From IMG/VR virus record IMGVR_UViG_3300043464_001630, positions 1-64,000 of that record: DNA of 64,000 nt. One strand, written 5' to 3'. The notes beneath the pieces are model-generated. The model was not told the DNA's origin. It searched no databases and saw only the letters and a list, made by a program, of their open reading frames with translations. The translations under genes were made by a program, and so were the position numbers. Positions 10,174-50,160 of this stretch are shown one piece after another. Positions within the stretch are counted from its first letter, which is position 1; the number at the start of each line of letters is the position of its first letter.

Positions 10174-10776
10174 GTGAGACAAAATTATATTAAGATTTCT
10201 AAGCTAGCTAAAGATCTAGGAGTAACTAAACAAACTCTTTGGAACTGGAAATATGCTGGTGAAGTTGATTTTGTTAAAATAGGTGGGTTAAATTGTGTAA
10301 CTAAAGAAACATACAATAATCTATTAGGAATAGAAAACAAGAAAAAAGAATCTGTTGTGATTTATTGTAGGGTTTCTTCGACGGAAAATAAATCTAATAT
10401 AGAAACACAAAAACAAAGATTGTTAAATTATTGCAATGCAAAAGGTTACAAAGTATCTGATGTGATACAAGAGTTTGGTTCTGGTATCAACGATAAGAGA
10501 CCAAAACTCGAAAAATTATTAAAACAGCAAAATTTTACAAAACTAGTAGTAGAACATAAAGATCGTCTAACAAGAGTAGGATTTAATTATATCAATACAC
10601 TGCTAAACTTCAATCATATTGAGATTGAAGTAGTTAATTCTGTTGATGATGATAGAACTGATTTAATACAAGATTTCATATCAATTATTACATCTTATTG
10701 TGCTAGAATTTACGGCAACAGAAGATCAAAAAGAAAAACTGAACAATTAATAAAGGAGCTTGAATCCAATGAGTAG
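10174..10776 (+). CDS. tnpA: IS607 serine recombinase TnpA
   Basis: N-terminal HTH (LGVTKQTLWNW), IYCRVSS, GSGINDKR, VEHKDRLTR, DLIQDFISIITSYCARIYG. Confidence 0.93.
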   Translation: MRQNYIKISKLAKDLGVTKQTLWNWKYAGEVDFVKIGGLNCVTKETYNNLLGIENKKKESVVIYCRVSSTENKSNIETQKQRLLNYCNAKGYKVSDVIQEFGSGINDKRPKLEKLLKQQNFTKLVVEHKDRLTRVGFNYINTLLNFNHIEIEVVNSVDDDRTDLIQDFISIITSYCARIYGNRRSKRKTEQLIKELESNE

Positions 10777-12355
10777 ATGCACAAAGAGTTATTCTTTCTA
10801 CTCGAAAGATCTTAACATAGGCAAATTCAATCTCTTTTTGAAGAAAGCCGAAGCAGTCAGAGATTATAAGAATGCTTTATCTGTCGAAATTTCATCTAAT
10901 CTCTTGAAGTACACTGAAGTTTCTAAGTTTGATTTCCTTAAAATGTTTGGTACGAAAACTAATTATTTGAATCCTAGCTCATTAATGAGAGGAAACGAAA
11001 TACAAAAAGCTGTAGCGGATGTGTTTGAAGCTTATCAAAATAAAATAACACAAATTAAACAAAAAATGTCTTTCTTTGTTCAAAAAGGAAAAGAGGTAGA
11101 ATTTTACAAAAGAAACACAAAAAATAATAAAAAAGGTGATGTTAGAAGTTATGAAATAAAAACTAAAAATACTCCATTGACAAAAACAATCACATTTCTA
11201 TCTCGTTATGGTTCCGAAAACACACTAGATTATGTCAATAAAAGAGCGAATCAAAATGATGACAAACAAGATTTCTATAAGACACTAAAAATACATATTC
11301 AAAAGTTTGGCTTAGAAAGATTGTCGAAACTTGCTTACAGCAAAAGAACACAAGTTCTAAATAAGTATAATTATCCAATCACATTCACCTCTCTATCTTA
11401 TCGTTCTGCTCTTCAGACGAACGATCCTTTGATTCAAAATTCCAAGAACAAAACATTTTCAAATGGAACTATTTCAATACCAAGCTTTAATGGAAAACAT
11501 ATGTTTGTTCCGACTACATTCAATGTAAAACATCATGGTCATTTGAATCAATATAAATCAAAAGAGTATATAATTTGTATCGAACAAAAGCGAAAAAGAA
11601 TCAGACTGATTACTACAAAAGAAACAGAAGAAACTATTTCTCCAGAAGGAATAAATTATTTAGGTGTTGACACCAACGTCAAACATAATCTATTTGCTAC
11701 TTCAGATGGAATGAATATTGACATGGACAGAGATTTGTTTCATGGTTATATTGCTTTTCTAAAGAAATACCAAGACAAGAAAGAACATACTTCTGGAGAA
11801 GATCAACAATTTGAACTATGGCAAGAACGTGTTCAGTGTATGCTCAAAAAGAAAGCTAGAGAGTTAGTTGATGTGGCTATAGCTTCTGGTAAGAATCATA
11901 TCATCATGGAAGATCTTGGTAACTTTGGTAAATCTTACACTAAATCAGAAGAGTTCGAAGGATTCAAATATTCTAGATTAACACGATTACTCAATCTTTC
12001 TTCTCTAAACAAAATTGTTAAAGGCATTTGTAAGAAGCTTGGTGTTAGACTAACTCTCATTCCTTCTCATTATACATCTCAGTGGTGCTTTGACTGTGGA
12101 CACATAGACAAAGCTAACAGAACCACCCAAGAAATTTTCCAATGTGTTTGTTGCAATGTAACAGCAAATTCAGACTTTCATTCTTCACGAGCCATCCTTA
12201 GGATAGGTTCTTCAGACGTTCTGAAGAGCAATATGCTCGTGATGGATAAATCATTCGATTGGATTCCTAAGAAACTCTCAAAAGGTTTCATAAGAAAACA
12301 ATTGGAAGAAATAATTCCTAAAACAACTTTTCAGTTGAATTGTCAAACTTTATAG
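10760..12355 (+). CDS. tnpB: TnpB RNA-guided RuvC nuclease (long, 531 aa)
   Basis: LGVD (RuvC-I), IMEDL (RuvC-II), YTSQWCFDCGH...CVCC Zn ribbon, NSD (RuvC-III). Confidence 0.88.
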   Translation: MNPMSRCTKSYSFYSKDLNIGKFNLFLKKAEAVRDYKNALSVEISSNLLKYTEVSKFDFLKMFGTKTNYLNPSSLMRGNEIQKAVADVFEAYQNKITQIKQKMSFFVQKGKEVEFYKRNTKNNKKGDVRSYEIKTKNTPLTKTITFLSRYGSENTLDYVNKRANQNDDKQDFYKTLKIHIQKFGLERLSKLAYSKRTQVLNKYNYPITFTSLSYRSALQTNDPLIQNSKNKTFSNGTISIPSFNGKHMFVPTTFNVKHHGHLNQYKSKEYIICIEQKRKRIRLITTKETEETISPEGINYLGVDTNVKHNLFATSDGMNIDMDRDLFHGYIAFLKKYQDKKEHTSGEDQQFELWQERVQCMLKKKARELVDVAIASGKNHIIMEDLGNFGKSYTKSEEFEGFKYSRLTRLLNLSSLNKIVKGICKKLGVRLTLIPSHYTSQWCFDCGHIDKANRTTQEIFQCVCCNVTANSDFHSSRAILRIGSSDVLKSNMLVMDKSFDWIPKKLSKGFIRKQLEEIIPKTTFQLNCQTL

Positions 12356-24367: not shown

Positions 24368-25378
24368 ATGCACGGACTAACACAACGCGAAGACGGACGG
24401 ACTGAATTTTTCAGCGCAGTCACACGCGGATATCATCAACTGGGTCAGCTCAGTGATCGTCAGTTGACAGCAGAAGAGGCGATCAAGGAATCGCTTCTAA
24501 ACTGGGAAGTCGAGCAGGTTCCGGTCTATCACCGTAATCCAGTAGACGAAGAACTCATGGAAGTTCCTGATCAGTTCCTCGTTCGTAGGACTGACAACTA
24601 CAATCCGCTGAAAGTTATGAGTGCTCGCTACACGCCGATTCAGAATCTCGAAGCATTCACATTCTTCGACGAAATTATTGGTTCTGGTCGAGCATGTTGG
24701 GACACTGCTGGTTCTTTGAAAGGTGGTCGTATTGTTTTCATGCAGGCTGAGTTGGAAGGATCATTGTTTTTGAATTCCAATCCAGATGACAAGACAGTAA
24801 AGAAGATTTTGTTCTTTACAAGTCACGATGGATCGAAAGCTTTGACAGGGCTTCTAACTCCATACCGCACAATTTGCGAAAATTCGTTTAACGCGGCTTT
24901 GCGAAATAATACAAATTGTTTCAAGATTTATCATCGCAAGAACTTCGCAGAAAAGAAGCACGAAGCATCTAAGGTTCTTGGATTTGCAAATGCGTTTTAC
25001 GATGATCTCCAACACGTTATGAATCAGTTTGCTGAAGAAGAAGTATCCAAGTCTTATGTCGAAGGATTCATAAATACTCTAGTTCCCGCTGAGTTGAATC
25101 CAGAAACTGGTCGTATTTCGACTCGTACCAGTAATCGTCGAAATGACATTGCAACCTTGTTTACTTCTGGTAAGGGTAACAACGGACGCACCAAGTGGGA
25201 TCTGTTCAATGCAGTCACTGAATATGTTGATCATCATCAAGGTGGTCGTCTCACCGAATCCCGTAAGAACCGTTCAGAGGAAGGAGTTTCCATCGAAGCA
25301 GAAGCACGTTTCGAACGAGCGATCCTTGGATCAGGTGCTCGAATGAAGCAAGAAGCAATGAACCTCTTGCTCAACTAA
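24368..25378 (+). CDS. DUF932/DUF945 phage-plasmid protein
   Basis: LNWEV, YTPIQN, TAGSLKGG, SHDGS, RTICEN, TKWDLFNAVTEYVDH. Confidence 0.85.
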   Translation: MHGLTQREDGRTEFFSAVTRGYHQLGQLSDRQLTAEEAIKESLLNWEVEQVPVYHRNPVDEELMEVPDQFLVRRTDNYNPLKVMSARYTPIQNLEAFTFFDEIIGSGRACWDTAGSLKGGRIVFMQAELEGSLFLNSNPDDKTVKKILFFTSHDGSKALTGLLTPYRTICENSFNAALRNNTNCFKIYHRKNFAEKKHEASKVLGFANAFYDDLQHVMNQFAEEEVSKSYVEGFINTLVPAELNPETGRISTRTSNRRNDIATLFTSGKGNNGRTKWDLFNAVTEYVDHHQGGRLTESRKNRSEEGVSIEAEARFERAILGSGARMKQEAMNLLLN

Positions 25379-28695: not shown

Positions 28696-29574
28696 ATGAA
28701 CAAAACCACTAATAAACCAAATAACTTCGATAACTTCTTCCAATCATTGCCGATGGATATTTTCAATCGAAATGATAATAACAACTGGCTAATTAGCAGT
28801 ACGCCAAAGAGCAGGTTAGTGACTATTACTCCTCAATTAGGCGAAGAACTTATTAGCAGAAATATCGGAAACCGTAATCTTAGTCTTGGTGAAGTTTCCA
28901 AGCTGAGAGAAGAAATTCGTAGAGGTAATTTCGTGACAACTGGTCAAGGGCTAAGTGTAAACACGCAAGGAATTCTTGTAGATGGACAGCATCGTCTATA
29001 TGCTCTAAAGGCTGAAGGTTGGCCGAATGTAAAGATGTTTGTGATGACTGGTATTGCTGATGAAGCAAAGATGTACTTTGATCAACATCGCATCAGGCGC
29101 GAAAAAGATATCTTTGACATCGAACATCCTTCTGCAAAGGTTAAGAGTCGGTTCTTTTCTGTACTAAATTATATTATTCAGTACAATAATAAGTGGAACC
29201 GCATAGGTAGGACGAAGCTTGTCAACTCAGAAAAGAAAGAAATGATTCCAATCTACAAAAATGAGATTGACAACGTAGTAGATATTGGCTCCCCGAAGGC
29301 ATTCTTTGCTTCTCCGCATTATGCTGGCTTTGTTGTAGTTGCACACGAAACTGGTCGGTTATCAGAAGTTTGTGATTTTGTCAAACAAGTAGCAGATGGA
29401 ATCAACCTTACGGACAAGATGCCAGCGTATCACCTTCGTAACTTCGTTTCAATGCAACGCGGAGGAAGCGGTTCGAATATTCATCAAGAACGAATGATGA
29501 AATCTATCGCAGCTACAAGAGCATTTCTTGACAAGAAGGAGATGAAGCTTTTGCGAGCTTCGTACAGTATTTAA
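28696..29574 (+). CDS. ParB/Srx-like N-terminal domain protein
   Basis: NRNL...LVDGQHRLYA. Confidence 0.65.
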   Translation: MNKTTNKPNNFDNFFQSLPMDIFNRNDNNNWLISSTPKSRLVTITPQLGEELISRNIGNRNLSLGEVSKLREEIRRGNFVTTGQGLSVNTQGILVDGQHRLYALKAEGWPNVKMFVMTGIADEAKMYFDQHRIRREKDIFDIEHPSAKVKSRFFSVLNYIIQYNNKWNRIGRTKLVNSEKKEMIPIYKNEIDNVVDIGSPKAFFASPHYAGFVVVAHETGRLSEVCDFVKQVADGINLTDKMPAYHLRNFVSMQRGGSGSNIHQERMMKSIAATRAFLDKKEMKLLRASYSI

Positions 29575-40667: not shown

Positions 40668-41090
40668 ATGAACGACGAGCGGTTGATATGGGAAGCCTAC
40701 AAAAGTAGAGAGGTAGAAACTATGGAATTTCCTATGTTATCTAAACCTAATGGAGTGTCGTATCGAGGCAAACCAGATTGGAAAAAATTTAAAGTAAATG
40801 GCTATTACAGGGATGGTGATGTATTAAGATACATATATTCACAACACAAAGAATTCGAAGACGACCACCGAGTAAAAAGAATTTATAAATTAATATCAAT
40901 AGATCCAAATAAATTAGAACCCAGCGAATGGGAAATAGATGATTATAAAGTAGAAGATTTGTCTAAGTCTAATGAACCATATCCTCCAATCGTAATCAAT
41001 AAAAACAAATCTATCGTAGATGGCGGACACAGATTAGAAGCAGCAAAAGTTAGAGGAGATAAAGAAATTCTAGTATTCTTACAACAATAA
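40668..41090 (+). CDS. MND-leader ParB/Srx domain protein
   Basis: MNDERLIWEAY; YPPIVI...IVDGGHRLEAA. Confidence 0.7.
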   Translation: MNDERLIWEAYKSREVETMEFPMLSKPNGVSYRGKPDWKKFKVNGYYRDGDVLRYIYSQHKEFEDDHRVKRIYKLISIDPNKLEPSEWEIDDYKVEDLSKSNEPYPPIVINKNKSIVDGGHRLEAAKVRGDKEILVFLQQ

Positions 41091-42163: not shown

Positions 42164-42430
42164 ATGAATAACCTTATTGATCCTCTCAAAATTATCAAAT
42201 CCACGAATGGCAAGTTCTTCAGTATCTCTTATACTAATAAGAAGGGAGAGACGAAAGATTACATTTGTCGTATAGGCGTAAAGAAGCACCTGCGTGGAGG
42301 CGAAAAGTACTTTGTGCCCGATAGTGTTACTGTTTATTCTGTTACTAATAGTAATAAAGGATACAAGACATTTGTAAGAGAACAAATAAACAGTATTAAA
42401 GTGGGTACTACCCTGTGGAGTGGAGTGTAA
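42164..42430 (+). CDS. Small SH3/WYL-like phage protein
   Basis: GKFFSISYTNKKGE...RIGVKKHLRGG. Confidence 0.45.
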   Translation: MNNLIDPLKIIKSTNGKFFSISYTNKKGETKDYICRIGVKKHLRGGEKYFVPDSVTVYSVTNSNKGYKTFVREQINSIKVGTTLWSGV

Positions 42431-42465
42431 AGGTAATTTGTCAGGGTCACCTCTCTTCTCTCCTT

Positions 42466-45400
42466 TGTTCCATGTGGAACATTCTCCAACGGAGAGAAGA
42501 GAGGATTCTGGGGAGAGTATAGTGGTTATGTTTAGAATGAATATGTTCTTATGCACATAATGCATAATGATTATTAGATATGCTTATAATGCATAAGAAC
42601 TATTAGATATGCACATAATACATGTGTGTTATTAGGTATGCTTAAATTGCATATTAGTTTCGCTTATCTGGGGTTTTCTCGTGGTTTAGGTCAGACCCTC
42701 CCCCCACCTCAAGGTTAATAAGAATCCTCTACTAATGGAAGGTTTATTTTCACTTTTTTTGGGTTTGTTTAGAAAAGGTCAGACCCTCCCCCCGTACCTC
42801 TAGGTTAGTATGCGATCCAGTATTTTAGCAAGAAAAAAGAAAAATAAAAATAGTGCTAAAGAAAAAAGATTTTCAGTTTTTCCTAAAGAGTTTTTTTCAA
42901 ATGCCTATTAAAAGGAGCCATGCAATTTACAAATTCCATTTGCTTAGAGTTAGCTACCCTTGCCTCTCTCAATCAGTTAGAGAAGCTCGCCGAGCGCCTG
43001 ACTGAATTGCAGCCCTTAGTTAAACAGGGACGCGGAACATGGGGGGAGAATATTGAAAAGATGTTGGCTTTTCTCTCTGACCGAAAGCCCCGCTTCTCCA
43101 TCTTTGCCAAGGGAAACGGAAAACTGCCGTTTGCTGCGTTTTCTGTGCTTCCGCTTGTTTCCTGCCCCGGTTCTGGTGCTTGTAAAAACTGGTGCTATTC
43201 TCTGAAAGCATGGCGATATCCAGCGGCTTTCTTTCGCCAGTTGCAGAACCTAATTCTTTTGATGTCCCCAGAGGGGCGGAAAACTGTCGCAGAGGCATGG
43301 AACAAGCTCCGCAAGGGGGCGCATGTTCGGTTGTACGTTGATGGGGACATTCACTCTCTTGAGATTCTAGAATATTGGCAGAACCTTTGTCGCCAGCGTT
43401 CAGATTTGCAGGTTTATGGGTATTCTAAAAGCTGGGGAATATTCTTGCGTTTCGATGGAGAATGGGCGTCGAACTATACTCTCAACCTTTCAAGCGGTTC
43501 GAAGTTTGTAAACAGCCCTAAAGTAAAAGAACAAATTTCCGCCCTTCCGATTGTGCGGGGTGAGTTTGTGGCTGTTCCCGTGGCTTCGAAGGCTCCAAAG
43601 CGCAACCTTAAAACGGGTCAGCCTCTGAACCCCGCAGCATGGCAGTCTCATAGGTTAGAGGTTCTAGCCGCTGCAAAGAAGCTAGGAATGGGTAAAGTGT
43701 TTGTTTGTCCGGGTTTGTGTGGATTCTGTGCAAACGGAAAACACGCTTGTGGCAATCGTGCATTTAACGGAATTCCGATTGTGATTGGAATCCATTAAAA
43801 TAGTTCTAAAGAATCCTCTATTCTTTGCCGATTAGTATATACCGGAAGGTTCGATCCCTTCCGGTTCACTCAGAAACCCAAAAAACAGCCATGATGCTCA
43901 AAGCCAAAAAATCGAAAAAGTCACAAAAAATTGTAATTGCATTCCCGATTGCAAACACTAATGGTCAAATGGTTTCGATTCATACAACCGTTGGAAAGTA
44001 TTCTTTTATTCTTGATTACTGGGCTGGTGATGCCGTCGAAAACGCTCTCAAGAGAATCGAGGAAGAGAATGTCACCGGAATCGGTTTTACGACAGCAAAC
44101 GGAACACCGATTCAAGTAAGGTTGCTAGATTAGCAGGTTTTAGAGAATCCCCTACTCTTTACGAAGGGCGGGGGATTCTCCGTTGTTCCACATGGAACAT
44201 TATAGGAACAGATAATAGGTTAAACCCTCCCGTCCTTCCTCTAGGTTAATAAGGATTCTCTATTACTACAACAGAAAAGAAAAAAAAGTTTCTGCTAAAG
44301 TTTTCTAGAAACCTGTTACTGATTCTTTGTTCCACATGGAACATTCCAGAATCTAGTGAGTATACAAACCCTCCCGTCACACCTATAGGTTAATAGAGAA
44401 TCCTCTATTCTTACAACCTTTTTCTTTTTTATTTTTCTGCTAAAGTCTTTCACCTTTCTTGCCTATTAGTAGTTATGCCGAAACATTCCTCTGACATTGC
44501 TTACGAGTTGACAAACCTCTTGAAGTTTGAAAGCATGAAAAGCGTTGGCGAATTTAGTGAAGCCTACGTCATCGGATACTTGAGCAGTATCTTGAAGAAT
44601 CTTGCAAAGTATCCTGAGGTTCAGCGTGAACTGGAAAAAGAAGTAGAAAGAATAAAAAAGTACTAAAGACGCTCTGCTGAAAAACCGACTACTCTGTATG
44701 ACTGTAAAACTGATCAACGCCGCAATCAAACACCTCAACCTCGAAATCATCAAAGGAAGCGGATACGTTTATTTTCTTGACTTGACTACTGGATATCAGG
44801 TGGGCGACTCTGTGCATATTGCATACCTCAATCATGTCAGCTTGGATCGGTGGATCGAAGAAGCCGAAGGTGCAAGAAAAGACGAAGAAGTAAAAAAGTT
44901 CTAAAGAATCCTCTACAAATACCGACTACTATATACCAGAAGGTCCAATCCCTTCTGGTTCACTCAGAAACCTTAGTACATTATGGAAAAACTCACCTTG
45001 GAAGAAATCACCCGCATTGCTGAAAAACTGGGAGTCAAGTTGGACGGGAATCCAACGCCAGCGCAGAAAGCCGAAATCGCAAACATACTTGTCACCCTTT
45101 TGGAAGTTGAAGCGAAACTGAAAAAGAACTAAAGTCTCTCCGAGAAAAACCGATTACTATATACCGGAAGGTTCCAGTCCTTCCGGTTCTCAACCCAAAA
45201 ACCAAACTACATTCTATGATCACCAAAAACGAAAACGGCACACTCTCAATCGGCGACATTCAAATCGTTTCTTCTTATAACAAAGAAACAAAGCAGCATA
45301 CCTTCAATCTGCTTAAAGCGGGTTGTGTTCCCGTTCAGCATATCGGGAATCACCTGACGCTCCGAAACAATATCACGAAACTGGTGGAACAAGTAGAAGC

Positions 45401-46291
45401 TACCTACGTTGAGGAAGTGGCCTCAGAAGTGGCCTCAGAATCGTTCAGCGAGACTATTCTGGACATTACAGAATTCGTTCAGATTCCAGTCGACGACAAC
45501 GCCCCCACTTCTGAGTCAGAAGATTATAACCTCTTCAAGGATTATCTAAAGAAATTCTCCGAAGCTACCGGAGAGGAACGGGAGAAATTTGCGGAGATTG
45601 CCAGTCAGATTCTCCTTGGCATGAACATTCAAGCGGTGTAAAGAATCCCCCCGCCACACTCACTAGAGACTCCCCCCTATCTAGTGAGTGTGGTATCTTT
45701 TTCACTTCTCTATTAAAAATGAATTTATAGCATATTCGTTTTTATATCATCGAGTCGTGAGTCAACCAAAAAAATCCCGCTCTCCCCTAAAAACGCTAGG
45801 CTCCTACACACAAGCGTAGGACTCCCACAAAAATAATACGGGGGCGCAAATAGTTCTAAAGAATCCTCTACAGTTGCCGATAGATATAGTGTCAGCGTAG
45901 TAAACCTTAAATTCACTTCTTATGTTCCAAGCAAACCTTGTCAAAGCTGTCTCTCACTACCCGCTCTCCAAGTTGATCCCTGATTCTATCGGAAACGAAA
46001 AAGACGAAGGTCTCTATGACTATTTTATCGACAGTCTTTCCGAAGGACGTATTGTGGGAGCAGGAGCTACTTTTATGCTTCTCGAACCCAAACTGTTCAG
46101 GAAGCACCTAATGAGTGCTCTAGAATTCGGCGAATTCAATCTCGCCGCTCTTGAGATTGAAGATATCCTAAGAACAACTGACACTCTGATTCTCCGCGAC
46201 ATTCACGTTTCATTGGCAGAGTAAAGAAGAAAGAAGTAGTCCCCTATGCTCTACGGAGTGTAGGGGATTCTCTATTGTTCCACATGGAACA
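42466..46291. repeat. Four parS-like 16-bp palindromes TGTTCCAYRTGGAACA (42466, 44184, 44328, 46276)
   Basis: Read directly; one mismatch from the parS palindrome TGTTCCACGTGGAACA. Confidence 0.7.
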
Positions 46292-46670
46292 TTCGGGAAT
46301 AGTAAGATACACTATAAGCATATCTTATATGCATTATGATGTATAAGCATAACTTCTAATAATAATATATAAGAACCTCCGCCCTCCCCCCTCCCTTTCA
46401 GTATATCACACTTGTCAAGCCCCAGTTTTGAGAGACTGGAATAGGCCAAACCCTCCCCCCGCCTCTAGGTTAATAAAGAAACAAGTGGTTTGTGAAGGTT
46501 TATTTTCACTTTTTTTCTGAGCTTTTACAATTCCAGACAGACCCTCCCTTCCGCCTCTAGGTTAGTTTGAAAATAATAGTTCTGTCAATCCCTTTTTTTG
46601 CAGAAAAAAAGAAAAGGTCATACCCTCCCGTCACGCCGATAGGTTAGTCCGCAAAACAGGGGGCAGTCAA
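42695..46670 (-). promoter_or_regulatory. Seven minus-strand units: A-tract, TTGACA-like, N17-18, TAACCT, AGAGG-like, N3-5, GGGAGGGT
   Basis: + strand ACCCTCCC...AGGTTA at 42695, 42783, 44224, 44368, 46450, 46541, 46622. Confidence 0.7.
42920..43798 (+). CDS. Gp88-like Cys-rich protein
   Basis: GNGKL, SCPGSGACKNWCY, RLYVDGDI, YGYSK, CPG.CG.C. Confidence 0.7.
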   Translation: MQFTNSICLELATLASLNQLEKLAERLTELQPLVKQGRGTWGENIEKMLAFLSDRKPRFSIFAKGNGKLPFAAFSVLPLVSCPGSGACKNWCYSLKAWRYPAAFFRQLQNLILLMSPEGRKTVAEAWNKLRKGAHVRLYVDGDIHSLEILEYWQNLCRQRSDLQVYGYSKSWGIFLRFDGEWASNYTLNLSSGSKFVNSPKVKEQISALPIVRGEFVAVPVASKAPKRNLKTGQPLNPAAWQSHRLEVLAAAKKLGMGKVFVCPGLCGFCANGKHACGNRAFNGIPIVIGIH

Positions 46671-47740
46671 ATTTATTTTCATTTATTTTTAACCTGTGTA
46701 AATCGTTGAGAATCATTAACTTACGAAGTTTTCGCGTTTAAAGGCGATTCTAGGGGGGTTTCTACCGTGTCAGCTATGATCACCCTACCGGCAATAGAAA
46801 GGGGATCAGAACGGGATTCTTGGCGATTCCAGAGTGGGTTCCTGTATTAGGTTCCGGTGAGCTTTTTCCCTACCGGCGAACCCTACCGACGAACCGTTGA
46901 AAACTTTTTTGCTAGTGTAACTTTCGGAAATATAGGGACTTATAAAATTATTTAAAAAAAGAGCTTAAGGGATTTGCCATTTCGTTCGAATACTAGGGTA
47001 GGTCAGCGAGATTCCGCTGGCTTGGCCGCGAGAGGCAAGGGAAGTCTCCGCTAGGGCTGGAACCTATGGTTACCAGAGTTGATGGTGCTCTCTGAAGAGG
47101 CTCGCAGAGGAATGTCCGATAGAATACGGGACGGTTCCGGTTGCTCAGGCTAGTACCCTGAGTGGCTACCAGCGAAGGTACACAGTATTTGTGGGGTTTG
47201 TCGCCAGCGTTTTACGGTTACCGAGATAGGGAATCCGAGAATAGAGCGTTGGCAATCAAACACTAATTAAGATTATGAAAATAACAAATGCCGTTTCCGC
47301 CGCTAATTCTAGTGATTTTGTTTATTCGGAAAATGTTAGGTACGTTTTTATCTGTAAAATGATCGAATCCCGAATCTCTTCACGACTTTTTCTGATTGAT
47401 GATTCGAAAGAACAAAAGTTACAGGATATAATTAATGGCGATTGGCGCAAAACCTTGGGATGTATTGATGAGCAGATTAAAAATCTAGAAAAAGAGCGGA
47501 TTCCTTTGGAGAAATGGCTCCGCGACAACGGAGCAAACGACGACGATTTAGACCATAGTTTGTGGTGCGACGACACAGATTGGAGAGCATGGGTAAATGA
47601 GGATTAGGTATTGTGTTCAGCCCCTTACACAATTCGGTGTAGGGGGCGCGGTTATAAGTGTTTTGCTTTCAGCCTTTTGTCAGTCCCGCTGTAGGGCACT
47701 GAGTTCACAAAGGGTTGAATAACAGTACACTAATTAAATT

Positions 47741-49273
47741 ATGACCCCATCAAAGTATCAAACCGCTGCAATCAACTGGATGACAAGCGGAAGCGGAAAC
47801 GCAGTTATTAGCGCAGTAGCAGGAAGCGGAAAGACGACTCTTTTGCTCATGATGCTGAAAGAGTTGTTCAAAGAAGGAAAGTGTCCCTCAGTGGCTTGCC
47901 TAGTGTTTGCGAAGAAAAACCAAGTGGAAATGGACTATAAGCTCAAAAGGGAAGGGATTCCCGCCGAGTCTTATACGGTTCACTCGCTTTGCCTCAGGGC
48001 ATATAGGAAGTTTGTTCCTAACTTCAAACTCGAAGGAAGGAAAGTGAGACTAATCCTCGAAGAAAACCTATCGTCTGAGGACTTTAGTCTCTATGCAACC
48101 GCTTGCGAAAAACTGGTTAAGTTCGCAAAGGACGACGGGGCCGGAATTTTTTGGCCCATTGCGGATGCTGCTCAATGGCAGCGCCTTATGGCGCATCATG
48201 ATGTCGAACTAGAGAACGATGCCACGATGGATCGGGCGATTGAGATTTGTCAGAAAACCTTAGAAGCGAACAATAAAGAGAAAATCTTTATAGATTTCTC
48301 TGATATGATTTATCTTACTCTGTTGAACGGGTACACTTTACCGAAGTTTGACTGGGTACTGGTGGACGAAGCGCAGGATTTAAGTCCCCTTAGACAAGCG
48401 GTTTGCTTTGCTTTGAAGGGAGAAAACACTCGCTTCGTTTTCCCCGGCGATAGAATCCAAGCAGTGTTTGGGTTCACTGGCGCGGATGCGGAGTCTCTGG
48501 ACAATATCAAATCCGCTTACAACGCTACAGAGCTACCGTTGTCAGTGTGTTACCGCTGTTCAAGCTCAGTGGTGAACCACGCAAAGCAATGGAATCCCGT
48601 AATTGAATCAGCACCAAACGCTGAAACGGGAAGCGTTACCGAAATGCCCTACACCGCGCTGACGGAAAAGCCTGAGTCTCTTAACCTTTCGTACAAAGAC
48701 GCGATCCTTTGCCGGACTAATGCGCCTTTGATGCGCACCGCGTTTTCTCTGATCAAAAAGGGAATCCCGTGCAGAATTGAGGGGCGGGACATCGCTCAGG
48801 GGCTCATTAACGTAATCGGAAAATGGAAAGTTAAGACACTGGACGCTCTCGAAAACCGCCTTTCCGATTACTTGGATCGCGAAACGCAAAAGGCTCAGAC
48901 TAAGGGTAATGAGGCTTTGGTAGGCGTCATAACCGATAAGGTGGATTGCATTAGGGCTTGCATGGAAAAGTGCTACCTCGAAGGCAAGACCCGCGTTGAC
49001 GACCTCAAAGCATTGATTGATAGCATGTTCTCGAACGCGGACGATAAGACAACCCGCCGCGACTTGCTCACCCTTTGCTCTGTCCACAAATCAAAGGGGC
49101 TGGAATGGGAACGAGTCTTTCTACTTGGGCGTCAAGACTTTATGCCTTCCAAGTGGGCAAAGAAAGACTGGATGAAGGTTCAGGAAACTAACCTTATCTA
49201 TGTAGCTATCACCCGCGCCAAGAGAGACTTAGTCGAAGTCACCGGAGTGTCTGAGTACCTCAAAGGCAAGTAG
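47741..49273 (+). CDS. UvrD/Rep-like superfamily 1 helicase
   Basis: AVAGSGKT, VDEAQD, GDRIQAVFGFTGA, YRC, ILCRTN, VHKSKGLEW, YVAITRAK. Confidence 0.92.
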   Translation: MTPSKYQTAAINWMTSGSGNAVISAVAGSGKTTLLLMMLKELFKEGKCPSVACLVFAKKNQVEMDYKLKREGIPAESYTVHSLCLRAYRKFVPNFKLEGRKVRLILEENLSSEDFSLYATACEKLVKFAKDDGAGIFWPIADAAQWQRLMAHHDVELENDATMDRAIEICQKTLEANNKEKIFIDFSDMIYLTLLNGYTLPKFDWVLVDEAQDLSPLRQAVCFALKGENTRFVFPGDRIQAVFGFTGADAESLDNIKSAYNATELPLSVCYRCSSSVVNHAKQWNPVIESAPNAETGSVTEMPYTALTEKPESLNLSYKDAILCRTNAPLMRTAFSLIKKGIPCRIEGRDIAQGLINVIGKWKVKTLDALENRLSDYLDRETQKAQTKGNEALVGVITDKVDCIRACMEKCYLEGKTRVDDLKALIDSMFSNADDKTTRRDLLTLCSVHKSKGLEWERVFLLGRQDFMPSKWAKKDWMKVQETNLIYVAITRAKRDLVEVTGVSEYLKGK

Positions 49274-50160
49274 CCTTCAGAGTTGCGGCTCAGGGGAGTT
49301 CAATCCTCTCCTGAGCCCTTCGCGTTTAAATGCCCTTTAAAAGGCTCCACCCCCTTCGTCAGTATCTCCACCGCCCCCCGCCCCCTATAGGCCATTAGAA
49401 ACCCCCGTAGCGTTCCGCCATTAGGGGATCATGATTGTCCCCTCAGTTCCGTTCACACAATAAACTCACGTTGGTAATAGATTCGCGTTCACATTACACA
49501 CTCAACCCACTCTAATAAACTCATGAGAGACACACACTTCCCTAACTTTGTTCACCTTATCCTTTCCAATAATCCTTCAGCCTATGCCAAGCAAGTGCTT
49601 ATTAGAGAGTCTAGTCTGTACTACAGAGACTTCTATTCCTCTTGCTACGTCCTGACTCTGGACGAAAAAGACTTCGCCATTAACAGAGCGGTGGAAAGGT
49701 TCTCTGAGTATGTAAACCTTTCGAAATCAACGCTAGACTCACTGGACGCGGTTAAGACTGCTGTCGCTCAGGTGCTTCAAGAATCTTATACTGAGTCTAT
49801 TCAAAGAACTTTCAAAGCTAAGGGGTTGGCTATGGTATAGGCGACCTCTCCTAATACGGGGCTCCCTTTTTCGGAAGGGGGTTCCCGTTTCAGGAAGCGT
49901 GCCACCTAGCGAAAAAGAAAGTTTTATTTTCTACTAAAGTTTTTGGGAGAACGGGGCTCTTCTATGCAGGTCGAGCATTTTAATTTGCGGCTTGCGTAAG
50001 TTGCATGACTGGTCGGGTGAGGGGGCATTGCCAAAATTTTTTTTGCAAATTTCTGGAAATTTTACTAAAGGCGATTTTTTAATATACAATCCTCTATTAT
50101 TTCCAGATCTTTTTTTGATATTTTAATTTTATATTTTTGTTGAGTAAAATATACGAAATT

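Follow-up and report, generated by a model that had tools for sequence, protein, structure and literature searches.

The DNA considered here is a window of 64,000 nucleotides, the first 64 kb of the 236,391-bp virus record IMGVR_UViG_3300043464_001630, which is rated complete and whose source is lake water metagenomes. An island of raised GC content in this window carries four exact copies of the 16-bp palindrome TGTTCCA(CA/TG)TGGAACA, which resembles parS, the chromosomal sequence on which the partition protein ParB is loaded. The four copies lie within 3.8 kb of each other and none is found in the other 232 kb of the record. The island and the sites, with the open reading frames (ORFs) and hairpins next to them, are as follows.

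42400-50000 (approximate), + strand: GC-rich island, 40-48% GC against 33.7% for the genome
42466-42481: parS-like site 1, TGTTCCATGTGGAACA, centre TG on the + strand, just after ORF 42164-42430
44184-44199: parS-like site 2, TGTTCCACATGGAACA, centre CA, starting 3 nt past the strong hairpin 44143-44180
44328-44343: parS-like site 3, TGTTCCACATGGAACA, centre CA, 144 bp past site 2, in a tandem unit
46276-46291: parS-like site 4, TGTTCCACATGGAACA, centre CA, starting 7 nt past the hairpin 46239-46268

A sequence-only reading of the window had already picked out the four palindromes, and their positions are upheld. When up to three mismatches are allowed, eight strand-matches are obtained in the window, which are the same four sites, and dinucleotide-preserving shuffles give an expectation of 0.54 matches, with none of 100 shuffles reaching the observed eight. 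Across the whole record there are no further copies with one mismatch and a single one with two mismatches, at 187122. Identity among the four palindromes is 100% in the 7-bp arms and only about 40% in the flanks of 20-30 nt. The placement of all four copies between genes is likewise borne out on the + strand gene map. The same reading had described two orientations of one 16-mer; for the bare 16-mer, the opposite-orientation and changed-centre readings of site 1 are indeed equivalent, but T...TT flanks on the + strand (TTGTTCCAYRTGGAACATT) are common to all four copies, and site 1 is therefore better taken as a same-orientation copy in which the central CA has become TG.

Variants of the region in contigs from other lakes carry many substitutions in the AT-rich repeats and C-rich units of the island and none inside the palindromes. 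In two contigs of another lake, the match ends at the edge of palindrome 2 or 3 (44201, 44326) and unrelated sequence follows. The arrangement fits conserved palindromes standing at the borders of exchangeable modules.

When compared with the perfect parS TGTTCCACGTGGAACA, the phage 16-mer agrees at 15 of 16 positions, the difference being one transition at central position 8 or 9, and it matches the 16-bp parS-class consensus TGTTNCACGTGNAACA. In Pseudomonas, TGTTCCACGTGGAACA is the perfect chromosomal parS and represents a tolerated 5/12 double-transition form of the more general TGTTTCACGTGAAACA (PMC5450999, PMC4368675). The distribution of the changed-centre form in prokaryotes was surveyed in 185,579 bacterial and archaeal species genomes (596 Gb), which were scanned with the 18-mer TGTTCCACATGGAACATT and in which 8-kb loci were inspected. 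At least 120 bacterial or archaeal loci contain this 18-mer, against an estimate of about 17 expected by chance. Further parS-like sites occur in 70 of the 120 listed loci (centres CA 86, TG 82 and CG 83), and the ParB box II (GERRxRA) and a ParA Walker motif are each encoded in 31 of the 120. Among the matches listed, identical 16-mers are clustered with canonical parS beside parAB in many phyla, examples being an Acidobacteriaceae array of 13 sites, two of them TG-centred, and a Ruminococcus parAB region of nine sites, two of them CA-centred. The description of the palindromes as parS-like thus stands, both by the single central transition that separates them from perfect parS and by the identical copies found in chromosomal parS clusters.

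The CA/TG form is also found by itself. In two Flavobacteriaceae and one Chitinophagales (G053, G054 and G055), it is the sole parS-like sequence genome-wide, present in 2, 2 and 4 clustered copies for the two Flavobacteriaceae and the Chitinophagales, respectively, and each of these three genomes encodes one canonical ParB. A same-family sample of 40 genomes has mostly one to three CG-centred sites, and such sites flank mnmG in both same-family genomes examined. In the Flavobacteriaceae G053 and G055, the CA/TG copies occupy the ybeY-mnmG spacer, a position orthologous to the CG-centred site of their relatives, and the four CA/TG-centred copies of the Chitinophagales genome constitute a non-coding array. 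CA-type and CG-type genomes do not differ in the helix-turn-helix of their ParB (RSTIANYLRLLKL ... MGHGRA). Bacteroidota loci with CA/TG-centred sites include L365 and L478 (Flavobacteriaceae), L369 (Chitinophagales), L476 and L477. It is concluded from these sequence comparisons that the CA/TG-centred palindrome is a natural and presumably functional form of parS, and we infer that ordinary ParB would tolerate it. The change from a CG to a CA or TG centre is common and apparently tolerated, and in some Bacteroidota it is fixed with the ParB helix-turn-helix unchanged. Restriction avoidance was considered as a reason for the changed centre and rejected, as CACGTG occurs 3 times in the phage genome against 4.8 expected. 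No mention of CA/TG-centred 16-mers was found in the literature searched.

The same sites are present in other viruses. The figures of the viral scans that follow are counts among the matches listed and serve as internal ratios only. For the flanked pattern with a pyrimidine-purine (YR) centre, the viral contigs gave CG 72, CA 33, TG 22 and TA 0; these contigs range from 22 to 66% GC and the sites are mostly intergenic. When the centre was left free and unique contexts were counted, the C-arm palindrome gave CG 46, CA/TG 24 and 26 for eight other classes, and the T-arm palindrome TGTTTCA..TGAAACA gave CG 101, CA/TG 37 and 12 for the others. A flank bias, T-rich and G-poor, is common to CG-centred and CA/TG-centred viral sites, and hundreds of viral contigs of 22-70% GC carry parS-like sites. 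Within one family of phages, the centre of the orthologous site is CG in some members and CA or TG in others, and the site itself is placed after a terminator and ahead of the start of a small, highly expressed gene. In a complete phage genome of 39 kb (G022), two canonical parS and one TG-centred copy together form a 90-bp array, and the one protein with ParB_N is a methylase fusion. A viral fragment (G049, L080) holds five canonical sites in 5.6 kb. Dense groups are also seen at locus L271, with 5 sites in 800 bp, and at locus L306, with 3 CA/TG-centred and 2 CG-centred sites.

The set of viral loci, which spans L006-L354 and was taken from IMG/VR contigs, includes 305 loci with a site: 273 have a single one and 12 have three or more. 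None of the 305 has a ParB box II or a ParA Walker motif near the site, compared with the 31 of 120 listed bacterial loci given above, and the binder is therefore not generally encoded by the phage. A ParB_N domain of any kind is found in 3 of 50 whole viral records, the one examined being a methylase fusion. A protein common to site-carrying phages was sought by comparing every island protein with the fetched viral loci by tblastn, which returned only helicase and GP88 homologues, and in these other loci the homologues are unrelated to the sites. By these comparisons, phage-borne orphan parS would be common, and no survey of host-type parS in phages was found in the literature searched. As a separate observation, a DUF932 protein is encoded at 24368-25378 of the window and another one adjoins the five-parS cluster of the unrelated phage fragment G049 (L230:972-1979), beside an SNF2 helicase.

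In the phage record itself, profile searches gave no match to HTH_ParB, to ParA (AAA_31) or to a tyrosine integrase (Phage_integrase). The sole match to PF02195 and TIGR00180 is a ParB_N fragment of 142 amino acids at 227.7 kb (ORF 227694), which is below the cut-off. Two ORFs in the window have motifs of this kind.

28696-29574, + strand: ORF of 292 amino acids with a DGQHR motif, phrog_5931, and a faint DpdB-like match (E 0.037)
40668-41090, + strand: ORF of 140 amino acids with a C-terminal ParB_N/Srx-like motif IVDGGHRLEAAK (DGGHR) and no helix-turn-helix

Judging from their sequences, ORF 40668 is not a canonical ParB and ORF 28696 is, at most, a member of the ParB superfamily, and nothing links the latter to the palindromes. 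A ParB of the phage's own was therefore rejected as the binder, given that the record has neither HTH_ParB nor ParA and that ORFs 28696, 40668 and 227694 are ParB_N-like at most. The earlier proposal of a "host (or its own)" ParB is in this way narrowed to its first half, which the comparative evidence favours: because canonical ParB and ParA are both missing from the phage, host ParB is the most likely binder.

Taken together with the identity to a natural parS variant, the clustering and the conservation, this makes it probable that the four palindromes are orphan parS sites for the host's ParB (Spo0J), of the type known from phage phi29. Phi29 is a lytic Bacillus phage with parS that exploits Spo0J of its host to bring the phage genome into the spore (PMC2731898; Meijer et al. 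2005 cited there). Its genome contains four identical copies of TGTTTCACGTGGAACA. Both phages are lytic (the lake phage by its appearance), lack ParAB of their own and carry one host-type parS 16-mer in four to five copies, with the host protein as the presumed binder. They differ in that the perfect sites of phi29 are CG-centred, lie mostly in coding sequence and are spread over a 19-kb genome, whereas those of the lake phage have a CA/TG centre, are intergenic, and occupy 3.8 kb of a 236-kb genome beside promoter-like units. Since the host of the lake phage lives in lake water, entrapment in spores is not to be assumed.

Binding of ParB, its spreading and all downstream effects can be predicted as follows. 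A dimer of chromosomal ParB (Spo0J) would nucleate on each site, with each helix-turn-helix reading one TGTTCCA(C/T) half-site. By analogy with characterised ParB proteins, host ParB bound to cytidine triphosphate (CTP) would load at the four sites and close into clamps, which would slide over the island's few kilobases and give rise to a partition-complex-like structure on every copy of the phage genome. The unintegrated phage genome would thus be coupled to the ParA/SMC positioning and segregation machinery of the host, and this coupling would allow it to be retained and passed on during a delayed infection. By analogy with the Spo0J-dependent spore entrapment of phi29, coupling to host segregation would most likely be the selected effect. 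Sequestration of host ParB by the replicating phage copies would be almost unavoidable and could itself be the selected function. Damping of the adjacent tandem promoter-like units by ParB is plausible, and this, too, could be what was selected; in Pseudomonas aeruginosa, ParB is reported to repress promoters next to parS (PMC5521831).

Several points weigh against host ParB as the reader of these sites. In P. aeruginosa and Burkholderia cenocepacia the CACGTG core matters, and symmetric changes of the core abolish binding (PMC5450999); binding to the natural central-A sites parS5 and parS10 is specific but weak (PMC4368675). The phage sites would accordingly be of low affinity in some hosts. 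The position of the sites, directly upstream of promoter-like units and beside hairpins, equally suits an operator, and the GC-rich island in which they lie is apparently acquired, so that they could have been imported with it.

The layout of the island bears on these last two points, and its remaining elements are listed here.

42440-42830, + strand: repeat region R1, with a hairpin, site 1, AT-rich 29-bp units and two C-rich units
42550-42653: three to four AT-rich 29-bp iteron-like units, each with TATGCA-N5-TGCATA; a related copy lies at 46307-46366
42691-46656, + strand: span of the C-rich units ACCCTCCC-N-CCTCTAGGTTAATA, comprising all 7 copies of the genome
42691, 42781, 44222, 44366, 46446 and 46620: C-rich unit positions from the repeat search; the seventh, at about 46538, was located by its CCCTCCC motif at 46542
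42920-43798, + strand: GP88-family gene
46250-46700, + strand: repeat region R2, with a hairpin, site 4, AT-rich TATGCAT-type repeats and three C-rich units
47741-49273, + strand: UvrD-type helicase gene

The credible genes of the island, which are the GP88-family gene, several small ORFs and the UvrD-type helicase gene, are all on the + strand. R1 and R2 are paralogous repeats of about 400 bp each. Two genes end before strong hairpins, ORF 43891-44133 ahead of site 2 and ORF 45922-46224 ahead of site 4; site 1 forms the tip of an inverted repeat with an 18-bp stem (42450-42504) and site 3 is nested in a weak hairpin (44316-44359). The C-rich units precede + strand genes in tandems of 2, 2 and 3; they are promoter-like, and probably strong promoters of an unusual type. 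The unit was found in no other fetched viral locus, and a scan of the island for sigma-70 promoters and terminators gave counts not above those of shuffles. The sequence-only reading had placed the palindromes downstream of minus-strand, G-rich promoter units. These repeats are real, being the CCCTCCC-N-AGGTTA repeats, present in 7 copies that are all in the island, but their direction has to be reversed: because the credible island genes are all on the + strand, the C-rich units stand downstream of the palindromes and upstream of the + strand genes.

Such a layout invites the idea that the palindromes are operators for a regulator of the C-rich units other than ParB, from the phage or from the host, with the likeness to parS being coincidental or convergent. 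Each promoter-like set is preceded by a palindrome, the neighbouring AT-rich TATGCA-N5-TGCATA repeats are other operator-like elements, and the site in other phages is often preceded by a terminator and followed by the ribosome-binding site of a highly expressed gene. The distance from the end of a palindrome to the CCCTCCC core of the next C-rich unit is an equal 26 nt for sites 2 and 3, but over all sites it varies from 26 to 215 bp. Moreover, hundreds of unrelated phages, spread over the range of 22-70% GC, contain the same 16-mer, as do bacterial centromere clusters beside parAB; no island protein is common to the other site-carrying phage loci, and among those island ORFs that were scanned against Pfam none has a DNA-binding domain. 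A regulator unrelated to ParB is for these reasons unlikely. The AT-rich 29-bp units could be an operator or an origin element in their own right, and nowhere in the region do lake variants differ more than in their tandem array.

It is quite improbable, likewise, that the sites are functionless passengers of a GC-rich island brought in from a host chromosome, a plasmid or another phage. The island does look foreign: besides its base composition, it has unique repeats of its own, no DNA similarity to the remainder of the phage genome, and only a partial presence in related lake populations. Passengers would, however, hardly have retained perfect arms in four copies whose paralogous flanks have diverged to about 40% identity, nor stayed intact in the variants from other lakes. 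In addition, the motif ATCCTCTA is common to the island and to the flanking low-GC region, and with a single site being the rule in viral loci (273 of 305), four sites place this phage in the top few percent.

Some likeness to an origin of replication also has to be weighed, in which the sites would be DnaA boxes or another origin element acting with the AT-rich iterons and the helicase gene. The relaxed DnaA-box consensus is TTWTNCACA, and TGTTCCACA, on one strand of the CA form, matches it at 8 of 9 positions; moreover, sites 1 and 4 have AT-rich 29-bp repeats beside them, and the island encodes a UvrD-type helicase. Neither the perfect 7-bp inverted arms nor the CG-centred orthologues, which lose the match, are explained in this way, and a G at position 2 of a DnaA box is unfavourable. 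The identical bacterial sites stand in parS clusters and not in DnaA-box arrays, and the GC skew of the phage genome tracks gene orientation, with no origin signal at the island or its palindromes. A role as DnaA boxes is thus very improbable. An action at the RNA level only, with the palindromes serving as small hairpins that aid termination or processing, is barely credible: each does fold into a 6-bp stem with a tetraloop beside or inside a gene-end hairpin (z-scores -2.2 to -5.9), but the sequence itself is invariant, with no compensatory changes among the copies or in hundreds of unrelated genomes, there is no U-tract, and no Rfam match was obtained at gathering or E-value thresholds.

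Orphan parS sites for host ParB thus remain the probable explanation, and their relation to known partition and repression systems can be described. Chromosomal parS of the TGTTCCACGTGGAACA type, as in Pseudomonas and Flavobacteriaceae, shares with the phage sites the 16-bp palindrome, identical 7-bp arms and clustering within a few kilobases; the phage sites differ in that the centre is CA/TG in all four, and in being viral and having no ParA or ParB gene nearby. N15, a linear phage-plasmid, encodes its own SopA and SopB, exists as a stable plasmid prophage and has dispersed, sopC-like inverted repeats to which its SopB binds, with an effect on the expression of phage genes as well. The resemblance to the lake phage lies in about four scattered palindromic partition sites, some of them near promoters, while the lake phage encodes no partition protein and has sites of the chromosomal parS type. 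KorB of plasmid RK2 is a plasmid-encoded sliding clamp of the ParB family that represses from OB palindromes. These palindromes also stand at variable distances upstream of promoters, but the operator sequence is another one, and the lake phage has no protein with a KorB/ParB helix-turn-helix.

The island has further features of its own. Between the three tandem C-rich units and ORF 47275 there is a GC-rich stretch of 560 nt without ORFs (46700-47260), which may represent a non-coding RNA or a structured leader; Rfam gave no match to it, and with a z-score of -1.7 its fold is not clearly better than those of shuffles. Cassettes are present between small ORFs at 43794-43867, 44888-44961 and 45116-45189 (also 45848-45880), in which the stop codon of the upstream gene lies inside AAAAAGTTCTAAAGAATCCTCTA and is followed by CCGAyTAnTATATA and the hairpin ACCGGAAGG...CCTTCCGGT; they are reminiscent of the promoter-stem-loop cassettes of T4-type phages. 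The island gave no DNA match to cultured phages, and the relatives of its helicase are only 33-35% identical. Locus L125, which has a GP88 homologue, was rejected as a relative of the island, as it belongs to an unrelated high-GC phage and is without the palindromes, and a second GC-rich region of the record, at 196-200 kb, was rejected as kin because it is coding and unrelated to the island.

Clues to the host were sought in the genome as a whole. The island has no meaningful DNA match to five candidate host genomes. A transposase-like ORF of 531 amino acids (10760-12355; phrog_506 / phrog_12300) has no close relative in the bacterial genome set, and a transposase scan of bacterial genomes for the host found nothing. 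No tRNAs and no psbA were found in the phage genome, and its structural proteins gave weak cyanophage hits only; the helicase hits were weak as well. The -7 promoter motif of Bacteroidota is not enriched in the phage, and Shine-Dalgarno-like motifs upstream of ORFs are at background. Palindromes of 6 bp are strongly avoided genome-wide, with GGATCC occurring 0 times against 38.8 expected, CTGCAG 0 against 26 and GGTACC 0 against 20.8, and CAGCTG, GCATGC, GAGCTC, CGATCG and ACCGGT having 0 occurrences each. This avoidance suggests a host rich in restriction systems. Low GC, background Shine-Dalgarno motifs and palindrome avoidance fit a host among the Bacteroidota or the cyanobacteria and prove neither. 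In addition, CTAAATA(A/G), which resembles the T4 late-promoter box, is about 10-fold enriched upstream of ORFs (289 crude ORFs).

Both parS itself and its phi29-type use by a lytic phage are already known as kinds. What is new is a jumbo freshwater phage with the CA/TG form in all four copies and with sites fronting tandem promoter-like units, as well as the wide occurrence of putative orphan parS in viral contigs, which suggests that orphan parS in phages may be a broad phenomenon. To our knowledge, the use of host segregation by lytic phages has so far been documented essentially only for phi29 and spore entrapment. As a tentative extension, which is possible if somewhat doubtful, orphan host-type parS, with the CA/TG form included, may be a widespread and barely described strategy of virulent phages for loading the ParB-CTP clamps of the host. 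Such a strategy could provide inheritance in carrier or pseudolysogenic cells, subcellular positioning, sequestration of ParB or timed silencing of early promoters. This jumbo phage, with its four sites in front of tandem promoter units, would then represent an unusually clear case outside spore-forming hosts.

If host ParB loads at these sites, a large, lytic-looking freshwater phage would plug into the chromosome segregation of its host without a partition protein of its own. This would bear on how virulent phages persist in slow-growing natural populations, as in pseudolysogeny and the carrier state. Additionally, orphan parS could help to predict the hosts of phages, and could flag those phages that are unsuited where persistence is unwanted.

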